A stretch of 64,000 nt of DNA. Origin: Anthoceros angustus. Lineage: Eukaryota > Plantae > Anthocerotophyta. Position 1 is the first letter of the stretch. Every line of letters starts with the position of its first letter. Below are positions 9,557 to 56,870 of this stretch, piece by piece. Where the stretch lies: contig MU008163.1 of NCBI GenBank assembly GCA_010909165.1, positions 558,001 through 622,000 on the forward strand, given 5' to 3'. Under the pieces are notes generated by a model. That model saw nothing but the letters and a program-made list of their open reading frames with translations. It was not told the DNA's origin and did no database searches. The position numbers and the translations under genes were made by a program.

Positions 9557-12250
9557 CTAGGTTCTTACGGCCGGATTTTGGAGCTTGGTGGTGCAGGTTG
9601 TAGGCGGTGGCTTTGTGCAGCAGGCGTTTGGGTTCATCAGCCGTGCGGCAGGCTTTTCTTGGAACGAGGAGCTTTGTGGTGCGGCCAAAAGGTAGTGAAT
9701 GCTGTTAGGGTTTATAGGAGGATCATCTTGATTTGGATCAGGAATGACAACTGGTGGTGGATCAGGTACTAATACAAAAGGAGGAGGAGGTGGCTGGTCA
9801 ACTGGCTGACCTACGTGCGCATCGTCTTCATCCTCATCCATGGGGAAATGGGCAATATCATCCTCTGGAGCAGGTAAAATCTCTCCCTCTGTCGCAGGTT
9901 GTGGTCTGTCGAGTTCCAAGAAGGTAACAGAACGAGCTAACACGACACGCTGATGTGCAGGATCAAAGAGTTTGTAAGCTTTCGATTGTTCACTATACCC
10001 GATGAAGATGAGGGCTTGAGCTCTCGGATCTAGTTTCTTCCTCTTCTCCTCTGGGATGAGAGCAAAAGCACGAGAACCAAATACTCGTAAATGCAGTAAG
10101 CTAGGTTTGCGTTTCCAAAATGCTTCATAGGGTGTCTTCGAAGGAACTGAACTTGTAAACAGTCTGTTCAATATGTATGTTGCAGCAACAATAGCTTCGG
10201 CCCAATACTCTTGAGGTAGGTTAGCCCATAGCAACATACTGCGTGTCATAGCTAGCAAAGTTTGGTTTTTCCTTTCTGCCACGCCATTCTGCTGTGGGGT
10301 ATACGGGACTGTAAGCTGACGTTGAATCCCCCTCTCTTGCAGGAAGTTATCAAACGCCAGGTTTACAAATTCCGTCCCATTATCTGTCCGGAGGTACTTT
10401 ACAGATTGGCCTGTCTGCTTCTCAGCAATCAACAACCAAACTTGGAAGAGCTCCAGAGTGTCACTCTTTAATTTCATGGGGAATGTCCATGTATAACGAG
10501 AGTAGTCATCCGTGATGCAGAGGTAATAGAGAGATCCACCCAAAGAGGGGACATGGATCTTCCCTGAGATATCTGCATGCAATAGCTCGAGAACTGTGGT
10601 AGCTCTGTAGGAAGCTGAGACAGGAAACGGGTGTGCCTTCTGTTTCGCAACAATACATGCTTCACAGGTTGGTAAGTCCTTAAAAACCTGAGGCAGTGGT
10701 TCAAGATGACATTTTTGTAATGACATATCTACCAGTTTCCTCTTATTAACATGCCCGAGCCTTGCATGCCACAGGACAGCAAGGTGTTGGGCCTGCTTCG
10801 ATACAAGGCTTGCCTTATGACGGAGAGTACAAATATCAAGCCTGTAGAGGTCATGATCTAATGTACCTCTGAACGCCAGCATAGATGGTTCTGTTTTCAT
10901 ATAGAAAAAACAGGTATCTTCACTAGCTTTCATATCATATATGCGCAGTTGCATCAACTTACTGAGAGAGACCAGATTTTTAGCCATGGAGGGCACATAT
11001 AGAACGCCATCCAGGGTAAGAATTGACCCATCATGAAGTGTGAACTTGCATGTGCCACAGCCGAGGATCTGGAGACTAGATTGCTTCCTTTCATCTCCCA
11101 ACAAGACTCTTTCTGATACACGATCAGTCTTTAATATGTAAAACTGATCTTTACTTCTACAGATGTGCGAGGTTGCACCAGAGTCTAAGTACCACCCATC
11201 TTCATCACGCATAGATCGGGCAAGACATACTGTAAGTATCTTCACCACTGGTTTGGTGTCACCTATAGTCTTCTCCTTAATTGCAACAGTTGCAGTATTT
11301 TTAGGAGTTCGTTTAGGTTCCCCTGCCTTCTTTTTCTTGCATTCTCGAGCCCAGTGTCCAGCTATACCGCACCAGTTGCAATTGCCTGGACGCTTAGATG
11401 GGCCAGCAGAATCTGAATTTTGACTGGGTTTACCTCCTGTCTTGCCTTTGCCTTTGAATATCCTGTGATTAGCCACTAATGCTCTCTCCGTTTTACTCTT
11501 AGGAGTTCCTGAAGAAAACAATCGACTCTGCTCTTCCTGATACAAGGCGCCTATCACCTCCTCAAGGGTGATGTTCACAGCACCTCCAGCAGCAACAGCA
11601 GCATTTGCAGTGCGCAAAGGACCATTCTGGCTAGTGATAAAAGACTGGTATGACGAAGGAAGTCGTGTGAGGAGCTCAGCTACAGCATCCACTTCCTCCA
11701 TCTTGGTTCCGATTAAAGCCATCAGGCTTTGGTGTGAAAATTTACTTGTGAAAATTGCCACCTTATCTCCCTCTTTCATTCTTAGGTTGTAGAACTCATG
11801 TTTAACTGCACAGAGTGTTAATACATTTGTAACCTTGTATGTTTTCTCCAGCTGTGTCCAGATTTCAGAAGCATTCTCGATGAACTCAACTTCCGGTATA
11901 AGATCAGCATCCAGGCCTCCTATCAGGAGGGCAATTGCAATGCCATTCAGTTCATCCCATTCAGCATTCTGATCTGGTGACGGGGCTGGATTTGAGTTTG
12001 GATCTGGTTTCTTAATGGTTCCATCCACGATCTTCCACACACGTCGAGCTATCAAAGTAGCCTTCATGCGGATACGCCAGATAAGGTATTTTGTACCATT
12101 AAAGCGGTCTTTCTCCTTCAGTTCTGACGTATATGTTGGCTTGGTTGCTGCGACAGCCATAGCTATAGGTAGGTTTGTAGTAACTACAGGTTGCTTGAGG
12201 CTAAGGGCCTGAAATGACACAATCAATGCGTCTAGTGACCCTGTGGACAT
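9557..12250 (-). CDS. Ty1/copia gag-protease-integrase polyprotein (897 aa; most of RT missing downstream)
   Basis: CNWCGIAGHWAREC knuckle, WYLDSGATSH protease, LWHARLGH...CEAC, LRTDNGTEF, TPQQNGVAERKN integrase, KLDPRA...FIGYS. Confidence 0.92.
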   Translation of the reverse strand: MSTGSLDALIVSFQALSLKQPVVTTNLPIAMAVAATKPTYTSELKEKDRFNGTKYLIWRIRMKATLIARRVWKIVDGTIKKPDPNSNPAPSPDQNAEWDELNGIAIALLIGGLDADLIPEVEFIENASEIWTQLEKTYKVTNVLTLCAVKHEFYNLRMKEGDKVAIFTSKFSHQSLMALIGTKMEEVDAVAELLTRLPSSYQSFITSQNGPLRTANAAVAAGGAVNITLEEVIGALYQEEQSRLFSSGTPKSKTERALVANHRIFKGKGKTGGKPSQNSDSAGPSKRPGNCNWCGIAGHWARECKKKKAGEPKRTPKNTATVAIKEKTIGDTKPVVKILTVCLARSMRDEDGWYLDSGATSHICRSKDQFYILKTDRVSERVLLGDERKQSSLQILGCGTCKFTLHDGSILTLDGVLYVPSMAKNLVSLSKLMQLRIYDMKASEDTCFFYMKTEPSMLAFRGTLDHDLYRLDICTLRHKASLVSKQAQHLAVLWHARLGHVNKRKLVDMSLQKCHLEPLPQVFKDLPTCEACIVAKQKAHPFPVSASYRATTVLELLHADISGKIHVPSLGGSLYYLCITDDYSRYTWTFPMKLKSDTLELFQVWLLIAEKQTGQSVKYLRTDNGTEFVNLAFDNFLQERGIQRQLTVPYTPQQNGVAERKNQTLLAMTRSMLLWANLPQEYWAEAIVAATYILNRLFTSSVPSKTPYEAFWKRKPSLLHLRVFGSRAFALIPEEKRKKLDPRAQALIFIGYSEQSKAYKLFDPAHQRVVLARSVTFLELDRPQPATEGEILPAPEDDIAHFPMDEDEDDAHVGQPVDQPPPPPFVLVPDPPPVVIPDPNQDDPPINPNSIHYLLAAPQSSSFQEKPAARLMNPNACCTKPPPTTCTTKLQNPAVRT

Positions 12251-12689
12251 AAATACTTACAAAAGGAAGCATACAGGAGCTATGGCTCTGACGATCCAGG
12301 TAAGTGTTTATGCAAACAGGTCAATTATGATTGCTAACTGTGGCATGTAGGGAAGGCCTAATGGGGGGGCTTAGCTTGGAGGGCTACGGGTACAGTGCAC
12401 CTGGGGCTGTTCATGCTAACCTCCCCGTCAAGGTCTTCTCTGTATGCTCAGGTCTCCAGAAGACACACTTAAGACGAAACGTCATGCTAGTTAACAACGT
12501 TTCGTTTACATGCCTCCTAACTTTTTTTATTTAAAAAATGAAACCCTAACTGTCATGCCACCTTCTCGTGAACAGATATGTCTGTTGGTCTGACCAATGA
12601 CATACAGAATGGAACACAGGGAGGAAAAGGCATACAAGTGTTTATGCCTCTTCAGATCTGGCACGTAACTCGTGCCTGTGCCTGGCGCA

Positions 12690-13700
12690 GCTAGCTTTCT
12701 GACAGCGGAAGCAATTTAGATTGGTGAATTACAATTCAAGGCATGTCCTCTTTCCATGTCCTGGATCTTCAAATTCAGGCTTTGTAGAAGATCAGATACT
12801 CTTCTAATGTCATGTTTGATGTCCAGGGTTGTGGATTGGAGAACTTGCTCAGTCGTCTGTTCCAGGTCTTCCACTCTGTTTCTGATAAGTACTTGATCTG
12901 AGATGACACAAGACAACGTTTTCTCTACCCTGATAGCAGTAGCCAAAGATTTATGCGCAATCTTTGCATTTGCTACTTGGTGAGAAATTAATGGTCGCTT
13001 GTTTGGAAATTGCGTGTGTAGGCAATAGGTGGTGGGCACTCGGCGTCGTATATGCCGTCGGGGTTTCTTCCCTCTTCTCCGACGAGCTCACGAATTGCTG
13101 GCAGCGATTCGGTCGGTCTTTGAGAAGATGGTCTCACTAGTCCACACCTAGAATGCTTGTCTACAAATTTCCTTAGCGAGATTAGCGTAGTGCAGCTGTG
13201 TGACTAGCTTTCGGCAGTGAAGCAATTTAGATTGGTGAATTACAATTCAAGGCATGTCCTCTTTCCATGTCACGGATCTTCAAATTCGAGCTTTGTAGAA
13301 GATCAGATACTCTTCTAATGTCATGTTTGATGTCCAGGGTTGTGGATTGGAGAACTTGCTCGATCGTCATTCGGTCTTCCACTGTTTTACGATAAGTACT
13401 TGATCTGAGATGACACAAGACAACGTTTTCTCTACCCTGATAGCAGTAGCCAAAGATTTGTCTGCAATGCTGCGACTGCTACTTGGTGAGAAATTAATGG
13501 CTGCTTGTTTGGAAATTGCACGTGTGTAGGCAATAGGTGGTGGGCACTCCTGGCGCTCGTATATGAAGCCGTCAGGTTTCTTCCCTCTTCTCCGAGCGAG
13601 CTGATCCGGCTGGTGAGCGATTCGGTCGGTCTTGAGAAGATGGTCTCACTAGTCCACACCTAGAATGCTTGTCTACAAATTTCCTTAGCCAGAGATTAGC
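12690..13700. repeat. ~511-bp tandem duplication upstream of the copia gag
   Basis: GAAGCAATTTAGATTGGTGAATTACAATTCAAGG occurs at ~12708 and ~13219. The copies differ mostly by 1-2 nt indels. Confidence 0.85.
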
Positions 13701-14679
13701 GTAATTCTGCTTGTAGAGATCTGTAGCTTCTTCAAGAGAACAGTGTCGTGGTTGGTATTGAGGGAGACCTCCTCCACGACCACGGCCTCTGCCACTAAGA
13801 TCTCTAGCAGGATTGCGGGATCTCGGCATTCTCAAAGTACTTGATCAGATGGTATCGAGGCCCTCGCTGCGCCATCGATCAAGTGCTGAGAATGCCGAGA
13901 TCCGCAATCACAGAGATCTGGTTTCTTAATGGTTCCATCCACGATCTTCCACACACGTCGAGCTATCAAAGTAGCCTTCATGCGGATCCGCAATCTGCTA
14001 AGGAAATTTGTAGACAAGCATTCTAGGTGTGGACTAGAGACCTCGACACCCAGCCGTCGATTGAATTAACGATTTTGGAGCTTGGTGGTGCACCTTGTAG
14101 GCGGTGGCTTTGCGTGACGTTTGGGTTCATCAGCCGTGCGGCAGGCTTTTCTTGGAACGAGGAGCTTTGTGGTGCGGCCAAAAGGTAGTGAATGCGCTGT
14201 GAGGCCACGATGGACGGTGAGGTTTTTGTGTGAGCGTGTGTGAGGGAAGGCGTGTGCGACTATTGCTATTGCACCGTGAGGTGCGGACACTTCTTGAAAC
14301 TGTTTGGTTTGTTTGGGCTGTCTTTGGGTTCCTTTGTAAGGCTCCTTAACTGCTCAACGTTTACAGTATGACTCCCGGACCAATCCGACGGTTTGACAAC
14401 AAGCTAAGATTCTTCACATAGGTGAGGAGGAAGGCTGTCAGTGAGGGAGGAAGGCTGTCAGTGAGGGAGGAAGTCCGTGAGGAGGAAGCAGTTCTGGAAA
14501 ACCCATCATTTGTTCTATTCCCTTTCTTTCTAGTTAGTATTGAGTCTGACGGCTGTCTCTGCACTCATTTTTCCTCTGTACAAACGCAAGCACATGACTG
14601 ATTTGTGTGTGCTTGTGGATGTTTGTCTTTCCTGTATTGCTGTCATCATGGGGAGGTGGTGGCACTGCTCGTTTACGCT

Positions 14680-15060
14680 CTTGGACTGTTGATCTGTCTA
14701 CTCGATATTCTGTCAATGAGCATGTGATCCTCAACCCTCCGGGATGGGTGGCGGAGGGATGTGCCACGGCGCAAGTTCGTAAGTACTTTGCTATGCAGCA
14801 GGGGCACGCCTTCATCGCCCTCGCCATCGAGATCCATGAGGCCATGGGCAAGGCCTTTGCTAGGTTCCTTAAGACCTGTGCCAGGGAGTACCATAGCCGC
14901 AGGAATGGGGTTGGCCTCCCTCTTTCATGTATCGTGGCTTACAGCTGACGGTGTCCATTGTCTGGGGGCATTGGCCAGCGGTGTATGGGGCGGCAGCAGC
15001 GGGGTAGGCGGTTTCTTCGGCACCGGTAGTGGGTAGGCCCTTTCATATCCCTGATTTTGA
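14680..15060 (+). mobile_element. Second CRE-like non-LTR 3' remnant
   Basis: AQVRKYFAMQQGHAFIALAIEIHEAMGKAFARFLKTCARE matches the same REL-type C-terminal pattern as 2058-2760. Confidence 0.6.
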
Positions 15061-21087: not shown

Positions 21088-21160
21088 TTCCGTAGCCGGG
21101 ACTCGAACCCGGGTCGCCTGGGTGAAAGCCAGGTATCCTAACCATCTAGACTACTACGGA
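21088..21160 (-). tRNA. trnE-UUC: tRNA-Glu (anticodon TTC)
   Basis: TCCGTAG acceptor pairs with CTACGGA; anticodon arm CCTGG-CT-TTC-AC-CCAGG; T arm CCGGG-TTCGAGT-CCCGG; T5 terminator a few bases downstream. Confidence 0.96.
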
Positions 21161-45116: not shown

Positions 45117-47486
45117 CTAAGAAGCAAACGATTTCACCTGATTGATCTCCCGAGCAATGTCTGCCATTTCTGGTTTATCTTCCATCTTGCGAAGTAGCTC
45201 GTCAATGATGCTGGTGGTTCTTGCGTCTGGAACACAGCCCGCACCTTGCATCTGATGCAAAAGCTGCAGCGAACTAGCACAATCTGCCCCTTCCAAGTAT
45301 CCAACCAGGAGAGAATTGAAAGTGAGCACGTCTGGGTTGCAACCATCAGTTGCCATTGATTCAAATAGCTGAATTGCCTTATCCATGTCTCCACTCCTAA
45401 CTAGCACGTCAATCATTGTGTTGTAGGTGATAACATCTCTCTGGATTTTCCTCCTTCTCATTTCTCCAAAGAGAACACCAGCCTCATGCACACTGCCGAG
45501 TTTGCCCAGAACACCAATAATGATGTTGTAGCTCACTACATTTGGCTCCACCCCTTTTGTTGTTTCCATGATCTCAAACAGACAACAAGCTTTCCCACTC
45601 TCTCCATTCTTGCTCAGACCATCAATCAGAGTGTTAAAGCTGATGACATCGGGGTTACAGCCAGATCTCTTCATTTCCTCCCACAGCTCAAAAGCTCTCT
45701 CAATATCACCCGCTTTGCACACAGCTTTTAAAAGAGAGTTATACACTACAAGATTAACCTCTGCTCGCTGTTCGTCGCCCTTAGGTAACCTCATCTCTTG
45801 GAACAAGCTGTACGCTTCATTGAGACGTCCCTCTTTCCCGAGACAATCTATAAGTGTAGAGTACGTGACAGCAGTCGGCATTGCCTGCTTGAGCTTCATT
45901 TCTTCGAAGAGCTGGAGAGCAAGATCAAACTTTCTTGCTTTTGCAAGGCCGCACGTGAGTGTGTTGTATGCGACTGGGTCAGGATGCCACCCTTTGTTCT
46001 TCAAATCAACAAAAAGGATGAGAGATTCCTGCACCTGCCCCACATCACTGTAAGCCTTCAGGATAATATTGTATGTGATGAAATCAGGAGGCAACCCAAA
46101 TTCCCCCATCTCAGCGAACAGATCCAAAGCATCTTGCAATTGGCCTGCCTTTGCCAGCGCATCAATCAATGTGTTGTATGCACTTGCATTCAGTCTCACT
46201 CCTCTTGCCTTCAGAACTGCAAAAACCTTCAAAGCATCCTTGGTGAAACCTGCTTTGGTGAGTCCAGCAAGGACTATGGTAGAAGTGTACACATCCGGAG
46301 CGCATCCTGTACTAGTCATGTGATTGAAGAGCTCAGATGCCTCGTCTGCCTTCCCTGTTTTACAAAGCCCATCCATCAGAGTATTGTACGTGGTTGCATC
46401 TGGGGATATGTTCATCTCCTTCATCTCTTCCAGCAATGCCAGCGCCTTGTCCATTTCACCGGCTTTCCCAAACCCATCACAGAGGATATTATAGGCCCTT
46501 GTGTTTGGACGCACACCCTCCTTCTTCATAGCCGTGAAAACACGGGATGCCTTGTCCATTCTCCCAACCTTGGCCAGCCCTTGCATTAGCACTGAGGTGG
46601 AGTACACATCCATTGTGTAGCCACACCTCTTAGTCTCCCTCCACAGCTTCAGAGCCTTGTCCAATTCATTCTCTCTAGCAAATCCACAAATTAGAGCACC
46701 ATAAGTCAACTCGTTTGGAACAAGACCCTCTCTTAGCATCTCCCTGAAGGTATCCCAAGCTTCGTCAATTGCCCTGCTCTTCACAAGACTTGATATCACA
46801 CATGTGTAGGTGTACGCATTCCTATCACACCCATCCTGCACCAATTGCCTATACACCTGGTGCACACCTTCATGATCCTCCGCCTTTGCAAACAGATTAA
46901 GCAGACAGTTGTAGATACCCCTGTTCGGTTTCCAGCTGAACTGCTCCAACCAGTTAAAAACAACCTTGCACTCCTCCAACCTGGCGTGACCACACCCAGA
47001 CAAAATCGTCGTCCACGTAGCAGTAGTGATTAGGCACCCCTCCATTTCCATACTTTTCAACACCTTCCAGATCTCGGAGAGAGAACTCACATTAAGCAGC
47101 AGAGCATTGTAGGTGAGTGTACTGTGGCTGAAACCTCTCTCCTTCGCAACCCAGTCGAAAAACCTCCGTGCCTGAACTCCATCCTCAATGTTCCTTAAAA
47201 ACTCGCTCACAATCACAGGCTCGAAGGAGTCATGCTGCAACTCCGCTAAAGCTTTCTGCACTCCTGAATCCCATCTGCCCGTTCTCAAAGCGGCAAGTAC
47301 TTTAGCAGAGGTTAAACCAGAAAATGTGACACTCGCATTCGCCTCCAACCTCCTGCTGCTCAAACTGGGACCCTGTGAGTCCTGTAAGGCGGACCTTGGT
47401 GCACCCAATTTTGCAGCAGAATGCACAGCCCTGGCCGACGACCCCAATATCCGCCCCTGCAAACTACGTCCGGAGACTTTGGCCAT
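45117..47486 (-). CDS. P-class PPR protein (789 aa), organelle-targeted
   Basis: Long array of 35-aa repeats (TYNTLMDGLCKTGK, PDVISFNTLIDGL), single ORF, N-terminal basic/Ser-rich peptide. Confidence 0.95.
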   Translation of the reverse strand: MAKVSGRSLQGRILGSSARAVHSAAKLGAPRSALQDSQGPSLSSRRLEANASVTFSGLTSAKVLAALRTGRWDSGVQKALAELQHDSFEPVIVSEFLRNIEDGVQARRFFDWVAKERGFSHSTLTYNALLLNVSSLSEIWKVLKSMEMEGCLITTATWTTILSGCGHARLEECKVVFNWLEQFSWKPNRGIYNCLLNLFAKAEDHEGVHQVYRQLVQDGCDRNAYTYTCVISSLVKSRAIDEAWDTFREMLREGLVPNELTYGALICGFARENELDKALKLWRETKRCGYTMDVYSTSVLMQGLAKVGRMDKASRVFTAMKKEGVRPNTRAYNILCDGFGKAGEMDKALALLEEMKEMNISPDATTYNTLMDGLCKTGKADEASELFNHMTSTGCAPDVYTSTIVLAGLTKAGFTKDALKVFAVLKARGVRLNASAYNTLIDALAKAGQLQDALDLFAEMGEFGLPPDFITYNIILKAYSDVGQVQESLILFVDLKNKGWHPDPVAYNTLTCGLAKARKFDLALQLFEEMKLKQAMPTAVTYSTLIDCLGKEGRLNEAYSLFQEMRLPKGDEQRAEVNLVVYNSLLKAVCKAGDIERAFELWEEMKRSGCNPDVISFNTLIDGLSKNGESGKACCLFEIMETTKGVEPNVVSYNIIIGVLGKLGSVHEAGVLFGEMRRRKIQRDVITYNTMIDVLVRSGDMDKAIQLFESMATDGCNPDVLTFNSLLVGYLEGADCASSLQLLHQMQGAGCVPDARTTSIIDELLRKMEDKPEMADIAREINQVKSFAS

Positions 47487-50400
47487 CGTTAAGGATAAAC
47501 AGTCCGTCAGATGACTCGAGTTGTCTCCATCGGACCTGGTCAGTGATGTCAGCTGTGCAAATACCCATGGCGCTGCAGCTGCACCATCGGCAACAGCCTA
47601 TGATATGATGAAGGTATAGTCCTTTTCCTTCCTACTCTACATTGCTACAAAGCAATACTATTTTGAAGCTATAACTTTTTGTTATGAATATCGTCCAGAG
47701 TTTTCACGCGTTTTTAAATATATTTTCATAAAACTATTTTCATTTCTTACCATCCAGAGTTTTCACGCATTTTTTATTTTCATAAAATTATTTTTAAATA
47801 TTTTCATTTTTATTCATATTTTACAAAATTATAATAGTTCAATCATTTGCTCATTAGCACCCCTCGTAAGGCAAAGTTAAACCCATACAAACTACCATCG
47901 TACTAATGAACCAAATAAAACCATGAATTAAAGACTTAACACTACAATAAAACATAAATTGAAACTATTAAAATTTATTCTTGTTAGTGAAGAGTCAAAA
48001 CACCTACGTAAGTAAGCTAAAGAGGCTAAGTATGATGTCATACTTTAGCATGATATGATCCAAATGCATTCCATTGGTATTTTGTCATCATAAACCAAAG
48101 TCAAAACCTGAAGTGGCTAGGTATGATGTCATACTTTGAGAACGGGATATGATCATGCTGATCAATAATCCGAATGGATCCTTTGGGCACTTTGTGATCG
48201 TAAACCAAAGTCAAAACTTGAAAAGTAATTCTCGTTGTCGGAATCGAATCCGGGTCGTAGTTGAACCCCGTATCGTGGTGGTCCAACCTCCGTATTTAAA
48301 CCACTATACTACAAACCAAAGTCAAAACTTGAAAAGTAATTCTCGTTGCCGGGATTCGAACCCGGGTTGTAGTTGAACCCCGTGTCGTGGTGGTCCAAGC
48401 TCCGTACTTAAACCACTATACTACAACGAGTTTGGTGTTCACAGTGTATGTTTACTAAGTATCTACTTATGTAGTATCGACAGTAAAGCAAATGAAACAT
48501 ATTTTGTTAGGTATGATGTCATACTTTGAGAATGATATGATCATGCTATGAATAATCCGAATGGATCCTTTGGGCACTTTATCATCGTTAACCAAAGTCA
48601 AAACTTGAAAAATAATTCTCGTTGCCAGGAATCGAACCCGGGTCGTAGTTGAACCCCGCGTCATGGTGGTCTAAGCTTCGTACTTAAACCACTATACTAC
48701 AAACCAAAGTCAAAACTTGAAAAATAATTCTCGTTGCTGGGAATCGAACCCGGGTCGTAGTTGAATGTCGTGGCGGCCCAAGCTCCGTACTTAAACCAAT
48801 ATACTACAGCGAGTTTGGTGTTCACAGTGTATGTTTACTAAGTATCTACTTATGTAGTATCGACAGTAAAGCAAATGAAACATATTTTGTTAGGTATGAT
48901 GTCATACTTTGAGAATGATATGATCATGCTATGAATAATCCGGATGGATCCTTTGGGCACTTTGTCATCGTTAACCAAAGTCAAAACTTGAAAAATAATT
49001 CTCGTTGCCAGGAATCGAACCCGGGTCGTAGTTGAAACCACTATACTACAAACCAAAGTCAAAACTTGAAAAATAATTCTCGTTGCCGGGAATCGAACCC
49101 GGGTCGTAGTTGAACCCCGTGTCGTGGCGGCCCAAGCTCCGTACTTAAACCACTATACTACAACGAGTTTGGTGTTCACAGTGTATGTTTACTAAGTATC
49201 TACTTATGTAGTATCGACAGTAAAGCAAATGAAACATATTTTGTTAGGTATGATGTCATACTTTGCAAACGGTATGATCATGCTGATCAATAATTCGAAT
49301 GGATCCTTTGGGCACTTTGTCATTGTTAACCAAAGTAAAAACTTGAAAAGTAATTCGTTGCGAATCGAACGGTCGTAGTTGAACCCGTGTCGTGGTGGTC
49401 CAAGCTGCATTTAAACCACTATACTACAACGAGTTTGGTGTTCACGGTGTATGTTTACTAAGTATCTACTTATGTAGTATCGATAAAACAAATGAAACAT
49501 ATTTTGTTAGGTATGATGTCATACTTTGCAAGCGGTATGATCATCGATCAATAATTCGAATGGATCCTTTGGGCACTTTGTCATTGTTAACCAAAGTCAA
49601 AACTTGAAAAGTAATTCGTTGCGGAATCGAACCGGGTCGAGTTGAAACCACTATACTACAAACCAAAGTCAAAACTTGAAAAATAATTCTCGTTCGGAAT
49701 CGAACCCGGTCGAGTTGAACCCGTGTCGTGGCGGCCCAAGCTCACTTAAACCACTATACTACAACGAGTTTGGTGTTCACGGTGTATGTTTACTAAGTAT
49801 CTACTTATGTAGTATCGACGAAAGCAAATGAAACATATTTTGTTAGGTATGATGTCATACTTTGTAAAGCGGTATGATCATGCCGATCAATAATTCGAAT
49901 GGATCCTTTGGGCACTTTGTCATTGTTAACCAAAGTAAAACTTGAAAAGTAATTCGTTGCCGAATCCGGGTCGTGGTTGAACCCGTGTCGTGGTGGTCCA
50001 AGCTCCGTGAAACCACTATACTACAACGAGTTTGGTGTTCACGTGTATGTTTACTAAGTATCTACTTATGTAGTATCGACGAAAGCAAATGAAACATATT
50101 TTGTTAGGTATGATGTCATACTTTGTAAAGCGGTATGATCATCGATCAATAATTCGAATGGATCCTTTGGGCACTTTGTCATTGTTAACCAAAGTCAAAA
50201 CTTGAAAAGTAATTCTATTGAATGGATCCTTTGGGCACTTTGTCATTGTTAACCAAAGTCAAAACTTGAAAAGTAATTCTGTCGGAATCGAACCGGTCGA
50301 GTTGAACCCGTGTCGTGGTGGTCCAAGCTCCGTACTTAAACCACTATACTACAACGAGTTCGTGTTCATAATGTATGTTTACTAAGTATCCACTTATGTA

Positions 50401-52893
50401 GTTTCTGATGAAAGCAAATGAAACATATTTTCATTATCATACAACATGATGATTTTTCACAAAACAAAATAATTCTCATTGTCGGAATTGAACCTTGTTG
50501 ATAGTTGAACCCGTGTCGTGGCCCAAGCTCACTTAAACCACTATATGTACTACAATGAACCAGTCGAGTTGAACCCGTGTAGTGGCGGTCGAGCTCGTGC
50601 TTAAACCACCATACTACAATGAGCCGGGTCGTAGAAGAAGAAGAAGAATTTTATTTAAGTCCACTAAGGACGGATTTATATGGGACGGATAAACAAAGAG
50701 ACTATAATGAAATTTAAGCGCTATTCGAGTGCGTGAGAATAGTGTGAGGCATAATCAAATATCCGCAAGTTGAGAAGTTCAAGTTGGTTGGTCCTCATTT
50801 CCACATTTGTTTCAAGCAAACTCCTACAATAATAGGGTCGAAAATTGAAAAATCACAGTGAAGATCGAGCTCGTAAATAGATTGATAAATGTATGTATGA
50901 TATCTTCATATATGGGACACGGAAAACAAAGTGTTCCTCGGTCCTAGTTGAACCCGTGTCGTGGCGGTCCGAGCTACATGCTTAACCCACTATACTACAA
51001 CGAGTTTGGTGCGTGTTACTAGGTATCTGCGTATCTAGTACCAACAAGAAACCAAATGAAACCTATGTAACCTAATTTGCCATCACACAATAGGATCATG
51101 CTTCAAAAATAAAGTGAAAGTGTTATGAGTAAATCTAGTTGCCGGAATTGAAGCGGGTCGTAGTTGACCCCATGTCGTGGCGATGCAGGCTGCAGACTTA
51201 AACCATTATACTACTACAACAACAACAACAATGACACACCACACATACACACACACACATATATGATCTTTTGTCCACTTAGAGTGGAAGGACCACCATG
51301 GGATAGAAAAGGTATAGGCGAAAGGTGAAAAAAGACCTACATCGTGCGTCGAACTAGAGAGACAAGCAACATGCATATCTATGAACCAGAGAGACAGGCG
51401 ATGCAAGCAAGAAGGCAATCGAGACGATCAATCAACAGTGTCATAAAAAGGTCGAGGACAAAATAACCAAATGATCACCACGAAAAAAGGGTACCTAACC
51501 CAAGGCATGAGCAGTCTTAAAAGCAGACAATTTCTCCTTCTTATTTTGCCACTGCAAAGGGATAAGGCCCTCGTTCAATATGCAAGATTGTTTGTTGTTT
51601 CTCATGAAGAAGTCCTATGTCATTGATATATATTCAGTATATGTATTGTGAACATGAAACTACAATGAGTTTGATGTTCACGTGTATGTTTACTAAGTAT
51701 CTACTTATGTAGTATCGACGAAAGCAAATGAAACATATTTTGTTAGGTATGATGTCATACTTTGAGAATGATATGATCATGCTATGAATAATCCGAATGG
51801 ATCCTTTGGGCACTTTATCATCGTTAACCAAAGTCAAAACTTGAAAAATAATTCTCGTTGCGGGAATCGAACCGGTCGTAGTTGAACCCAGCGTCATGGT
51901 GGTCTAAGCTTATTTAAACCACTATACTACAAACCAAAGTCAAAACTTGAAAAATAATTCGTTCTTTGGGAATCGAACCCGGTCGTAGTTGAATGTCGTG
52001 GCCCAAGCTCACTTAAACCAATATACTACAACGAGTTTGGTGTTCACGGTGTATGTTTACTAAGTATCTACTTATGTAGTATCGACAGTAAAGCAAATGA
52101 AACATATTTTGTTAGGTATGATGTCATACTTTGAGAATGATATGATCATGCTATGAATAATCCGGATGGATCCTTTGGGCACTTTGTCATCGTTAACCAA
52201 AGTCAAAACTTGAAAAATAATTCTCGTTGCCAGGAATCGAACCCGGGTCGTAGTTGAAACCACTATACTACAAACCAAAGTCAAAACTTGAAAAATAATT
52301 CTCGTTCGGAATCGAACCGGTCGTAGTTGAACCCGTGTCGTGGCCCAAGCTCCGTGCCAAACCACTATACTACAACGAGTTTGGTGTTCACGTGTATGTT
52401 TACTAAGTATCTACTTATGTAGTATCGATAAACAAATGAAACATATTTTGTTAGGTATGATGTCATACTTTGCAAGCGGTATGATCATCGATCAATAATT
52501 CGAATGGATCCTTTGGGCACTTTGTCATTGTTAACCAAAGTAAAACTTGAAAAGTAATTCGTTGCGAATCGAACCGGTCGTAGTTGAACCCGTGTCGTGG
52601 TGGTCCAAGCTCCGTGCCAAACCACTATACTACAACGAGTTTGGTGTTCACGGTGTATGTTTACTAAGTATCTACTTATGTAGTATCGACAAAGCAAATG
52701 AAACATATTTTGTTAGGTATGATGTCATACTTTGCAAACGGTATGATCATGCTGATCAATAATTCGAATGGATCCTTTGGGCACTTTGTCATTGTTAACC
52801 AAAGTCAAAACTTGAAAAGTAATTCTCGTTGCCGGGAATGGATCCTTTGGGCACTTTGTCATTGTTAACCAAAGTCAAAACTTGAAAAGTAAT

Positions 52894-52983
52894 TCTCGTT
52901 GCCGGGAATCGAACCCGGGTCGTAGTTGAACCCCGTGTCGTGGTGGTCCAAGCTCCGTACTTAAACCACTATACTACAACGAG
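52894..52983 (-). ncRNA. Best-preserved tRNA-like unit with non-canonical extended anticodon arm (similar copies at 48341-48430 and 49078-49167)
   Basis: CTCGTTG-TA-GTAT-AGTGGTTTAA-GTAC-G-[GAGCTTGGACCACCACGACACGGGGTTCAACTACGAC]-CCGGG-TTCGATT-CCCGG-CAACGAG-A, followed by T-runs. Expression is unproven. Confidence 0.6.
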
Positions 52984-53273
52984 TTCGGTGTTCATAATGT
53001 ATGTTTACTAAGTATCCACTTATGTAGTTTCTACAGTAAAGCAAATGAAACATATTTCATTATCATACAACATGATGATTTTTCACAAAACAAAATAATT
53101 CTCATTGTCGGGAATTGAACCTTGTTGATAGTTGAACCCCGTGTCGTGGCTGTTCGAGCTCTGAACTTAAACCACTATATGTACTACAATGAACCAGGTC
53201 GTAGTTGAACCCCGTGTAGTGGCGGTCTGAGCTCCGTGCTTAAACCACCATACTACAATGAGCCGGGTCGTAG

Positions 53274-53613
53274 AAGAAGAAGAAGAATTTTATTTAAGTC
53301 CACTAAGGACGGATTTCCGTCATGGGACTGATCCGACGGATAAACAAAGAGACTATAATGAAATTTAACTGCTATTCTGAGTCTGGCGTAGAGAATAGTG
53401 CTGTGAGGCATAATCAAATATCCGGCAAGTTGAGAAGTTCAAGTTGGTTGGTCCTCATTTCCCACATTTGTTTCAAGCAAACTCCTACAATAATAGGGTC
53501 AGGAAAATTGAAAAAATCCCTGAGTGAAGATCGAGCTACTGTAAATAGATTGATAAATGTATGTATGATATCTTCATATATGGGACACAGGAAAACAAAG
53601 TGTTCCTCAGTCC
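53274..53613 (-). mobile_element. 5'-truncated LINE (ORF2 C-terminal zinc-finger remnant, 3'UTR and (TTC)n tail) inserted in a tRNA-like unit; duplicate at ~50634-50944
   Basis: Minus strand reads TEEHFVFLCPIYEDIIHTFINLF...MWEMR...*, ends in (TTC)n, and splits GGGTCGTAG|TTGAACC with TAG on both sides. Confidence 0.72.
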
Positions 53614-54719
53614 TAGTTGAACCCCGTGTCGTGGCGGTCCGAGCTCTGTACTTAACCCACTATACTACAACGAGTTTGGTGCGTATTTACTAGGTATCTG
53701 CGTATCTAGTACCAACAGTAAACCAAATGAAACCTATGTAACCTAATTTGCCATCACACAATAGGATCATGCTTCAAAAAATAAAGTGAAAGTGTTATGA
53801 GTAAATCTAGTTGCCGGGAATTGAAGCCGGGTCGTAGTTGACCCCATGTCGTGGCGGTACGAGCTCTGTACTTAAACCATTATACTACTACAACAACAAC
53901 AACAATGACACACCCACACATACACACACACACACACATATATGATCTTTTGTCCACTTAGAGTGGAAGGACCACCATGGGATAGAAAAGGTATAGCTGA
54001 AAGGTGAAAAAAAAGACCTACATACGTACGTCTGAACTAGAGAGACAGCAACATGCATATCTATGAACCAGAGAGACAGGCGATGCAAGCAAGAAGGCAA
54101 TCGAGACGATCAATCAACAGTGTCATAAAAAGGTCGAGGACAAAATAACCAAATGATCACCACGAAAAAAGGGTACCTAACCCAAGGCATGAGCAGTCTT
54201 AAAAGCAGACAATTTCTCCTTCTTATTTTGCCACTGCAAAGGGATAAGGCCCTCGTTCAATATGCAAGATTGTTTGTTGTTTCTCATGAAGAAGTCCTAT
54301 GTCATTGATATATATTCAGTATATGTATTGTGAACATGAAACTACAATGAGTTTGATGTTCACAGTACATGTACTTATTGAATACCAAGAGTAAAGCAAA
54401 TTGAAACTCATTTGGTCATTGCACACAAAATGATATACTTCACAAAACAAACTGGTCTTAACTGAACCTTGCATCGTCACTCTTGCATTTTGGGATATTA
54501 TTTGAGCAAAAGTTTATGGAAATTAATTTTGACTTTGTGAGACTCAAATTTAATGATTCTAAATTTTGAAAAAAAAAGAGATCCATGTTCTCAAAATTGG
54601 GACCACGGACCACGAACAAGACATCATCGAATAGCCCTGCTCACGCTCTGTGCCTAACACGATGACCACGGGGAACGATTGAAAACAACGTCCAAAACAG
54701 GCGATCTGAACGCCAAAAT

Positions 54720-56469: not shown

Positions 56470-56550
56470 AATATGATAACTACATAGATTGCGGTAAAAT
56501 GATCTGGAAGAATGTAAAGATAAAATTCAAACAAGAGAAATAATCTTCAA

Positions 56551-56870
56551 TCAATCAACAGTGTCGATGAAATAGCGTGAACGAGGGCCAAACACAACCA
56601 ATTCATCCCCACGAAAGAAAGCCACTTGACCTGTAGTGCGAGCTGCTCTGAAAGCGGGTAACTTCTCCCTCTTAGTCTTCCATTGTAATGGTGTAAGATT
56701 CTCATTGATATGTAACTGAGTTGTCCGTAACATAGACCCAGCCTTCATAACCTAGAGGCAATCATCCATAGAGTGAAAAGTCATAATCAATATGGGCTCC
56801 CTACCAGGATCCTTTCCAAGCCAGAAGGCTTGAGGAACGGTTTGTAGATGAGGATAGAAAATTAGATATT
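56551..56870 (-). mobile_element. LINE ORF1-like C-terminal remnant
   Basis: AFWLGKDPGREPILIMTFHSMDDCL*VMKAGSMLRTTQLHINENLTPLQ...FRAARTTGQVAFFRGDELVV resembles the RRM/C-terminal end of L1-type ORF1p; contains an internal stop. Confidence 0.6.

Follow-up and report, generated by a model that had tools for sequence, protein, structure and literature searches.

The question raised by a 64,000-nucleotide (nt) stretch of the hornwort Anthoceros angustus genome (contig MU008163.1, positions 558,001 to 622,000; hereafter the window) is what a tandem array of transfer RNA (tRNA)-like units at positions 48118-54363 represents. The initial annotation of this DNA had proposed an amplified family of non-decoding tRNA-shaped RNAs or a TFIIIC-binding boundary array. 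Based on the anatomy of the units, their internal duplication, the arrangement of the copies and the pattern of substitutions and deletions among them, the array is probably a tandemly amplified, decaying pseudo-tRNA cluster derived from one rearranged, non-decoding cytosolic tRNA-Asp gene. The array was delimited by self-BLAST, Tandem Repeats Finder (TRF) and monomer alignment, and all of its units lie on the minus strand.

Anatomy of the intact units

A BLAST search with the best unit, together with a ten-unit profile, revealed 26 unit pieces on the minus strand between 48230 and 53897, close to the approximately 25 counted in the initial annotation. The census covered the whole window, including the other 58 kb, where the profile search found no further copy except the T arm of a true tRNA-Glu gene (21088-21160). 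Three of the 26 pieces are intact units of 90 nt each, named Ub (48341-48430), Uf (49078-49167) and Ug (52894-52983). They score 40.5, 40.1 and 40.1 bits, respectively, against the Rfam tRNA model (RF00005; E ~5e-6), for which the gathering score is 29 bits; Ub was also reported by ARAGORN.

The acceptor stem, the A and B boxes and the downstream T-runs described at the outset are all present in these three copies. The acceptor stem is a perfect 7 base pairs (bp; CTCGTTG/CAACGAG) with A as the discriminator, the 4-bp D arm contains the A box (TAGTATAGTGG), and the 5-bp T arm contains the B box (GGTTCGA(T/A)TCC), with a gap of 50 nt between the two boxes. A run of four or five T residues (T4 or T5) lies 5-9 nt 3' of the unit and is followed by a second T4. 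In Ub the A box is at 48413-48423, the B box at 48352-48362, the middle arm at 48371-48401 and the T4 runs at 48332-48335 and 48324-48327. The corresponding positions in Uf are 49150-49160 (A box), 49089-49099 (B box) and 49069-49073 (T5), and in Ug 52966-52976 (A box), 52905-52915 (B box) and 52885-52888 (T4). Judged by sequence, the intact copies hold the full type-2 layout of RNA polymerase III (Pol III), namely A box, B box, workable spacing and T-run terminator. The trinucleotide CAA, in the form CACCAAA, is found just 5' of most monomers in which the 5' end is kept, including two of the three intact units, as had been noted earlier; it is lacking from the unit ending at 52983 (Ug), which has CACCGAA, and from the 5'-truncated units.

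No 5-bp anticodon stem with a U33 loop could be found in the 37 nt between the D and T arms, and the anticodon arm is absent in every copy. The Rfam model aligns the acceptor, D and T arms of the intact units and skips 29-31 nt at the position of the anticodon arm, and it is because of this skip that they pass its threshold. Both the Rfam alignment and a cloverleaf-constrained fold bear out the earlier view that the units do not decode: lacking an anticodon stem-loop, they are predicted to be unable to do so. An intron-containing tRNA and a tRNA with a long variable arm were rejected as interpretations because no 5-bp anticodon stem is placeable. For tRNA annotation it is a warning that ARAGORN reports the units as tRNA-Pro and that three of them exceed the Rfam threshold. 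The tRNA-Pro label was dismissed as a forced parse, in which a D-stem base is used, a variable loop of 2 nt is left and the anticodon changes between copies (TGG at position 34, GGG at position 35).

Descent from tRNA-Asp and the internal duplication

The D and T halves of the units had been likened to plant cytosolic tRNA-Asp, and this ancestry is supported at the 5' end. The first 18 nt of the unit are identical at 17 positions to a plant tRNA-Asp primer (PMC6521008), and the only differences between the unit and a 24-nt soybean tRNA-Asp fragment (PMC3519564) are G1>C and TT inserted in the D loop. Since the 3' partner of position 1 is G, the exchange there leaves the pair intact. The comparison with published sequences covered the 5' half. 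On these matches the units appear to descend from cytosolic tRNA-Asp, ancestry being established for the 5' half.

A long hairpin had been described in place of the anticodon arm. The pairing TTGGACC/GGTTCAA is indeed present; in the cloverleaf-constrained fold it forms part of an 11-bp stem, interrupted by two bulges, whose 7-nt loop (ACGACAC) carries C in the place of U33. The variant in which GGACC becomes GGGCC, with the pair retained as G-U, was likewise seen, in Uf (GGGCC/GCC) and at 48729-48813. The idea of a new arm did not stand. In every unit, positions 41-58 and 59-76 form a tandem repeat of approximately 18 nt, in which ACGACACGGGGTTC aligns to ACGAC-CCGGGTTC; in local alignment, 38 of 5000 shuffles scored as well. 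In Ub the first copy lies at 48373-48390 and the second copy, with the working B box, at 48355-48372. By this alignment the duplication spans the variable loop and the T stem and T loop, and the hairpin's 3' strand is a second, decayed version of variable loop, T stem and B box. The "long hairpin" thus exists largely because of the 18-nt internal tandem duplication, and it would be the by-product of a tRNA-Asp gene rearranged by slippage, with no designed new arm gained.

The tRNA shape is also not the fold that the unit is predicted to prefer. The minimum-energy fold (-34 to -38 kcal/mol) pairs positions 15-25, in the D-loop region, with 31-41 and positions 49-60 with the T arm, and the cloverleaf is less stable than this by 7-11 kcal/mol. 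In the folding model, a unit RNA would favor the alternative fold over the tRNA shape. Two of the three intact units fold much better than shuffled sequences, with z values of -3.3 to -4.8.

Architecture of the array

The monomers fall into a short form of ~260 bp and a long form of ~345-383 bp, and TRF reported periods of 112, 261 and 383 in the array. The 112-bp sub-repeat consists of the unit and a 28-bp trailer and is the source of the 5'-truncated second units. Above the monomers there is a higher-order repeat of ~2.68 kb: in self-BLAST, 54363-51932 matches 51681-49328 with 92.5% identity, and 53057-51659 matches 49840-48420 with 92.2% identity. The array consists of head-to-tail repeats each carrying a tRNA-type gene, the arrangement by which plant tandem tRNA clusters are recognized. 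Twenty-three of the 26 pieces are broken or unreliable: they are truncated, carry internal deletions, are old and diverged, have been split by a retroelement or fall in an interior of low sequence quality. Within each higher-order copy, four old diverged units (o1 to o4) lie in the upstream half.

One of these, o2 (53614-53674, minus strand), retains its 5' part only, having been cut after CAACTA by a 340-bp insertion (53272-53611, minus strand), of which a paralogous copy with 89% identity is found at 50633-50942. The last 58 bp of the insertion (53272-53329) end in (TTC)4, and the piece is present again at 50631-50673. In a small DNA run (X1) the depth over this piece is ~11,000-15,000, against ~13 in the flank (~1000x), with loose ends beginning at 53329, and the piece also occurs in many contigs of a possible RNA run (X2). 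From this extreme depth and its presence in X2, the 58-bp piece was identified as the 3' end of a very high-copy retroelement. The retroelement split the unit before the 2.68-kb duplication, which indicates that the array behaves as passive DNA.

Sequence quality of the interior

The interior of the array, at 49171-52893 on the minus strand, contains 15 unit pieces, as determined by paralog comparison and profile search. They are located at 52824-52881, 52560-52638, 52302-52378, 52222-52261, 51967-52034, 51853-51933, 51134-51218, 50934-51003, 50567-50622, 50474-50558, 50283-50357, 49955-50029, 49690-49767, 49618-49659 and 49356-49432. Small deletion runs number 55 in this region against 4 in its clean paralogs toward the two ends of the array (38 versus 3 and 17 versus 1), with roughly four deletions for each substitution, in one copy only. 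Forty-one of the 55 runs are at or next to CG, CAG or CTG, compared with a background of 22% (p = 3e-16).

A one-sided excess of this kind would be unlike the evolution of paralogs. The pattern suggests that the interior deletions are long-read errors left uncorrected at methylated cytosines, and much of the variation among copies between 49171 and 52893 resembles assembly error. The bias of the deletions toward CG and CWG (W, A or T) also suggests, from the noise itself, CG and CHG methylation of the array. The damage seen in the 15 interior pieces is consequently untrustworthy in either direction. From neither X1 nor X2, both used as contigs, could the array be recovered as a clean, independent copy. 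An X1 contig covering 48882-49064 lacks six letters in the T-arm region and is matched by no copy in the window; given this contig, some of the interior deletions may be real or may come from another locus. In practical terms, deletion noise biased to CG and CWG flags stretches of this assembly that are unpolished and probably methylated, in which apparent frameshifts and variants are unreliable.

Constraint and covariation

Constraint was assessed on eleven monomers and on a subset of four clean ones. Among the eleven, the unit shows 7.0% pairwise substitution diversity and the spacer 5.6%; among the four, 7 of 90 columns vary in the unit and 24 of 184 in the spacer. Extra constraint on the unit over the spacer was found in neither comparison, the ten usable sequences giving little power.

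Covariation was assessed on an alignment of ten units from the clean parts of the array (six young and four old), with noisy copies excluded. For the cloverleaf, the paired fraction is 89.2% compared with 89.1% in column shuffles, a value reached by 244 of 500 shuffles, so that no covariation was detected, at low power. The alternative fold gave a similar result (91.3% versus 90.9%, reached by 131 of 500), again without detectable covariation and at low power. The single double change, from G4-C86 to A-T in o4, involves two CpG sites, at which transitions would be expected in any case. In the middle arm, A>G changes recur; they preserve the pair in both folds and favor neither. Substitutions are thus spread without regard to stems, the pattern that the initial annotation had itself set against its proposal; with ten related sequences this is a weak result.

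Origin of the array and alternative readings

The founder would have been a tRNA-Asp gene in which slippage duplicated 18 nt covering the variable loop, the 5' T stem and the T loop. Its anticodon region would also have been scrambled, giving a 90-nt gene in which the acceptor, D and T arms and the two Pol III boxes survived but the anticodon arm was gone. The gene and its ~230-bp spacer would then have been amplified by unequal crossing-over operating at the 112-bp, 260-380-bp and 2.68-kb levels, and truncations, internal deletions and the retroelement insertion would have been gathered during amplification. The order of these events is what we infer from the sequence. Transcription by Pol III would still be possible from the few intact copies. 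The array as a whole is probably methylated at CG and CHG and, as in the Arabidopsis clusters, largely silent; its units would have no function as RNA.

Several observations weigh against a decaying pseudo-tRNA cluster, in addition to the low power of the tests for constraint and for cloverleaf covariation. All Pol III elements and a perfect acceptor stem are kept in three copies. The middle segment (CCA, TCAACTA) is unchanged even in the old copies. There is no CpG depletion in the array, where the observed/expected ratio is 1.06 as against 0.67 in the window. Relative to tRNA-Asp, pair 1:72 has changed from G-C to C-G and pair 2:71 has been tightened, and in o4 pair 4:69 is A-T where the young units carry G-C. 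The changes at 1:72, 2:71 and 4:69 are a hint of a past period in which pairing was important, with both 4:69 sites being CpG hot spots.

The alternative that survives best, although we consider it unlikely, is a lineage-specific family of Pol III-transcribed, non-decoding RNAs derived from tRNA-Asp, whose intact copies would yield transcripts processed by RNase P and RNase Z. The product would be a structured RNA or a source of tRNA-Asp-like 5' fragments, and the broken copies would represent debris of the sort common in multigene arrays. The three copies with intact A and B boxes ~50 nt apart, terminators and a perfect acceptor stem fit this explanation, as do the fold stability of two of the three intact units, the compensatory-looking changes at pairs 1:72 and 4:69 and a middle segment that is invariant in old and young copies alike. 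Against it, the unit is no more conserved than the spacer and no covariation was seen, the tRNA shape is not the favored fold and the hairpin would be a by-product of duplication, and the error pattern points to methylation. No X2 contig lies on any unit, in a run that is shallow and unsuited to small RNAs. Judged by the identity elements of yeast tRNA-Asp, a unit with A as discriminator and no anticodon would offer aspartyl-tRNA synthetase no handle, which also counts against such a family. With the unit as variable as the spacer, substitutions that ignore the stems and 23 of the 26 pieces broken or unreliable, the proposal of a maintained family of tRNA-shaped RNAs was not upheld. It seems more doubtful still that the unit encodes a lineage-specific Pol III RNA of tRNA-Asp origin, as yet undescribed, which is kept at several arrays in this genome with its intact copies expressed. 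Such an RNA might influence processes that depend on tRNA-Asp, for example by supplying tRNA-Asp-like 5' fragments or by serving as a decoy for tRNA-Asp-primed long terminal repeat (LTR) retrotransposons; no LTR primer-binding site matching the 3' end of the unit was found within the window.

It is very unlikely that the units are the tandemized heads of a tRNA-derived short interspersed nuclear element (SINE) or other mobile element, or a satellite inside a larger transposon. A tRNA-related head with A and B boxes and a non-LTR-type element with a (TTC)n tail inside the array are what such an origin would lead one to expect. However, the T4-T5 terminator follows the unit at once, leaving no body, tail or target-site duplication, in line with the earlier remark that a SINE-like body and tail are lacking; the (TTC)n element is an insertion into a unit and not the tail of one, and no dispersed copy is present in the other 58 kb of the window.

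In yeast and mammals, insulator activity is known for both tRNA genes and TFIIIC sites. Least probable of all, nonetheless, is an array of TFIIIC/Pol III sites acting at the DNA level as a chromatin boundary that would separate the pentatricopeptide repeat (PPR) gene (45117-47486) from the repeat-rich DNA past 54360, for which up to 26 B-box-like sites in 6 kb and the position directly upstream of that gene can be cited, since most of the B boxes are decayed or within the apparently methylated interior and the tandem tRNA clusters of Arabidopsis are themselves heterochromatic and form no barriers (PMC7544208).

Comparison with known systems

Tandem tRNA clusters of Arabidopsis include a tRNA-Pro array, a Ser/Tyr (SYY) cluster and a tRNA-Cys cluster with repeat units of 0.4 kb (PMC7544208, PMC10701932, PMC12308677, PMC11700998), and clustered Arabidopsis tRNA genes with intact cis-elements are methylated and silent (PMC7544208). 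The present array resembles them in its head-to-tail units of a few hundred bp, each with one tRNA-type gene, A and B boxes, upstream CAA and a downstream T-run, and in a probable origin by unequal crossing-over; methylation and silence are known in Arabidopsis, whereas for the array methylation is deduced from the deletion noise. It differs from these clusters, which consist of real decoding tRNAs, in that its units are without an anticodon arm, carry the 18-nt internal duplication and are mostly truncated.

With plant tRNA-derived SINEs the units share a tRNA-related sequence, internal Pol III boxes and a high copy number. Unlike SINEs they have no tRNA-unrelated body, tail or target-site duplications, are followed immediately by a terminator, and are tandem rather than dispersed. 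The 3' acceptor strand is also kept in the array units, closing a full acceptor stem.

Rodent BC1 RNA is a regulatory RNA derived from tRNA-Ala that has kept its Pol III boxes and adopts an extended hairpin in preference to the cloverleaf, a preference that the minimum-energy fold of the array unit shares. BC1 is a single conserved, expressed gene, and in this the array units, known here from sequence alone, are different.

The units resemble intron-containing tRNA genes in their length of ~90 nt and in having extra sequence between the D and T arms. A search of metagenome contigs with the pattern GTAGTATAGTGG, 40-62 nt and GGTTCGAWTCC gave 90 loci, which were rejected as relatives of the array. 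They are ordinary intron-bearing tRNAs that, unlike the array units, keep a 5-bp anticodon stem and loop around the intron, and they do not have the array insert. Among them are His(GTG)-like and Gly(TCC)-like genes with introns of 15-35 nt, and many are from one soil study. A pattern specific to the insert had no match in prokaryotic genomes or viral contigs, collections that hold little plant DNA. Unit-specific strings had no match in the literature searched, and no account of such arrays from hornworts or bryophytes was found there.

Tandem tRNA clusters are known in flowering plants as silenced extra copies, and the array would be a bryophyte case that grew from a dead founder, one that lost its anticodon arm via internal duplication yet kept its Pol III signals. 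At present it is a curiosity of genome turnover, which would become interesting only if the intact copies were expressed or the family were conserved in relatives.

Damaged units

The remaining pieces show a range of lesions, all on the minus strand. Ud (48729-48813) has a 5-nt deletion in the middle arm together with T5>C, G16>T and a G>A change in the T stem; it scores 28.1 bits with Rfam, below gathering, and folds no better than shuffled sequences (z = +0.37). Alignment and profile search placed Uc at 48617-48706, where the 5' acceptor strand has been swapped for the spacer sequence TGGTTTG and four substitutions are present, one of them disrupting the middle arm, and Ua at 48230-48318, which lacks the 5' acceptor strand and has a damaged T stem. 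In an internally deleted unit at 49000-49051 the D loop is joined directly to TTCAACTAC and the T arm; it has a twin at 52222-52273, and the surrounding segments 48882-49064 and 52104-52286 are 100% identical.

In the old unit o1 (53806-53897) the B box has decayed to CTTCAATTCC with only a T3 run after it, and a (GTT)n microsatellite has taken the place of the 5' acceptor strand. The (GT)n and (GTT)n microsatellites at 53898-53945 (minus strand) adjoin this unit. The 450-bp segment 53898-54345 has a paralog at 51224-51663 (97%) and a weak match (69%) at 56550-56697. The units o3 (53194-53262, without a T arm) and o4 (53100-53193) are joined head to tail at 53100-53262, where TRF found a period of 73. 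Rfam matches to CRISPR-DR63 on the plus strand at 53082-53121 and 50456-50494 (30-33 bits; gathering score 37) were rejected as chance matches to the decayed T arm and T-run of o4 and its paralog. A sub-threshold Rfam match to tmRNA, on the T arm and terminator, was likewise put down to chance.

Neighboring genes

The window has a GC content of 48% and its content is that of plant nuclear DNA, with a PPR-DYW gene, a P-type PPR gene, RCC1-like and lipase genes and a copia polyprotein. Open reading frames (ORFs) beyond 54360 gave no Pfam matches. The tRNA-Glu(TTC) gene at 21088-21160 (minus strand) is canonical, scoring 65.8 bits with Rfam, and its T arm is close to that of the array units. An open copia-type gag-protease-integrase ORF of 897 amino acids with Retrotran_gag_2, rve and SH3_retrovirus domains is found at 9557-12250 (minus strand), and near it lies a 150-bp direct repeat (12708-12857 and 13219-13368). 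Directly downstream of the array there is an intact P-type PPR gene (45117-47486, minus strand) encoding 789 amino acids. The exact protein has no record in the collection searched (5.8 billion proteins), in which its closest match is Marchantia MpPPR_17, with 34% identity.

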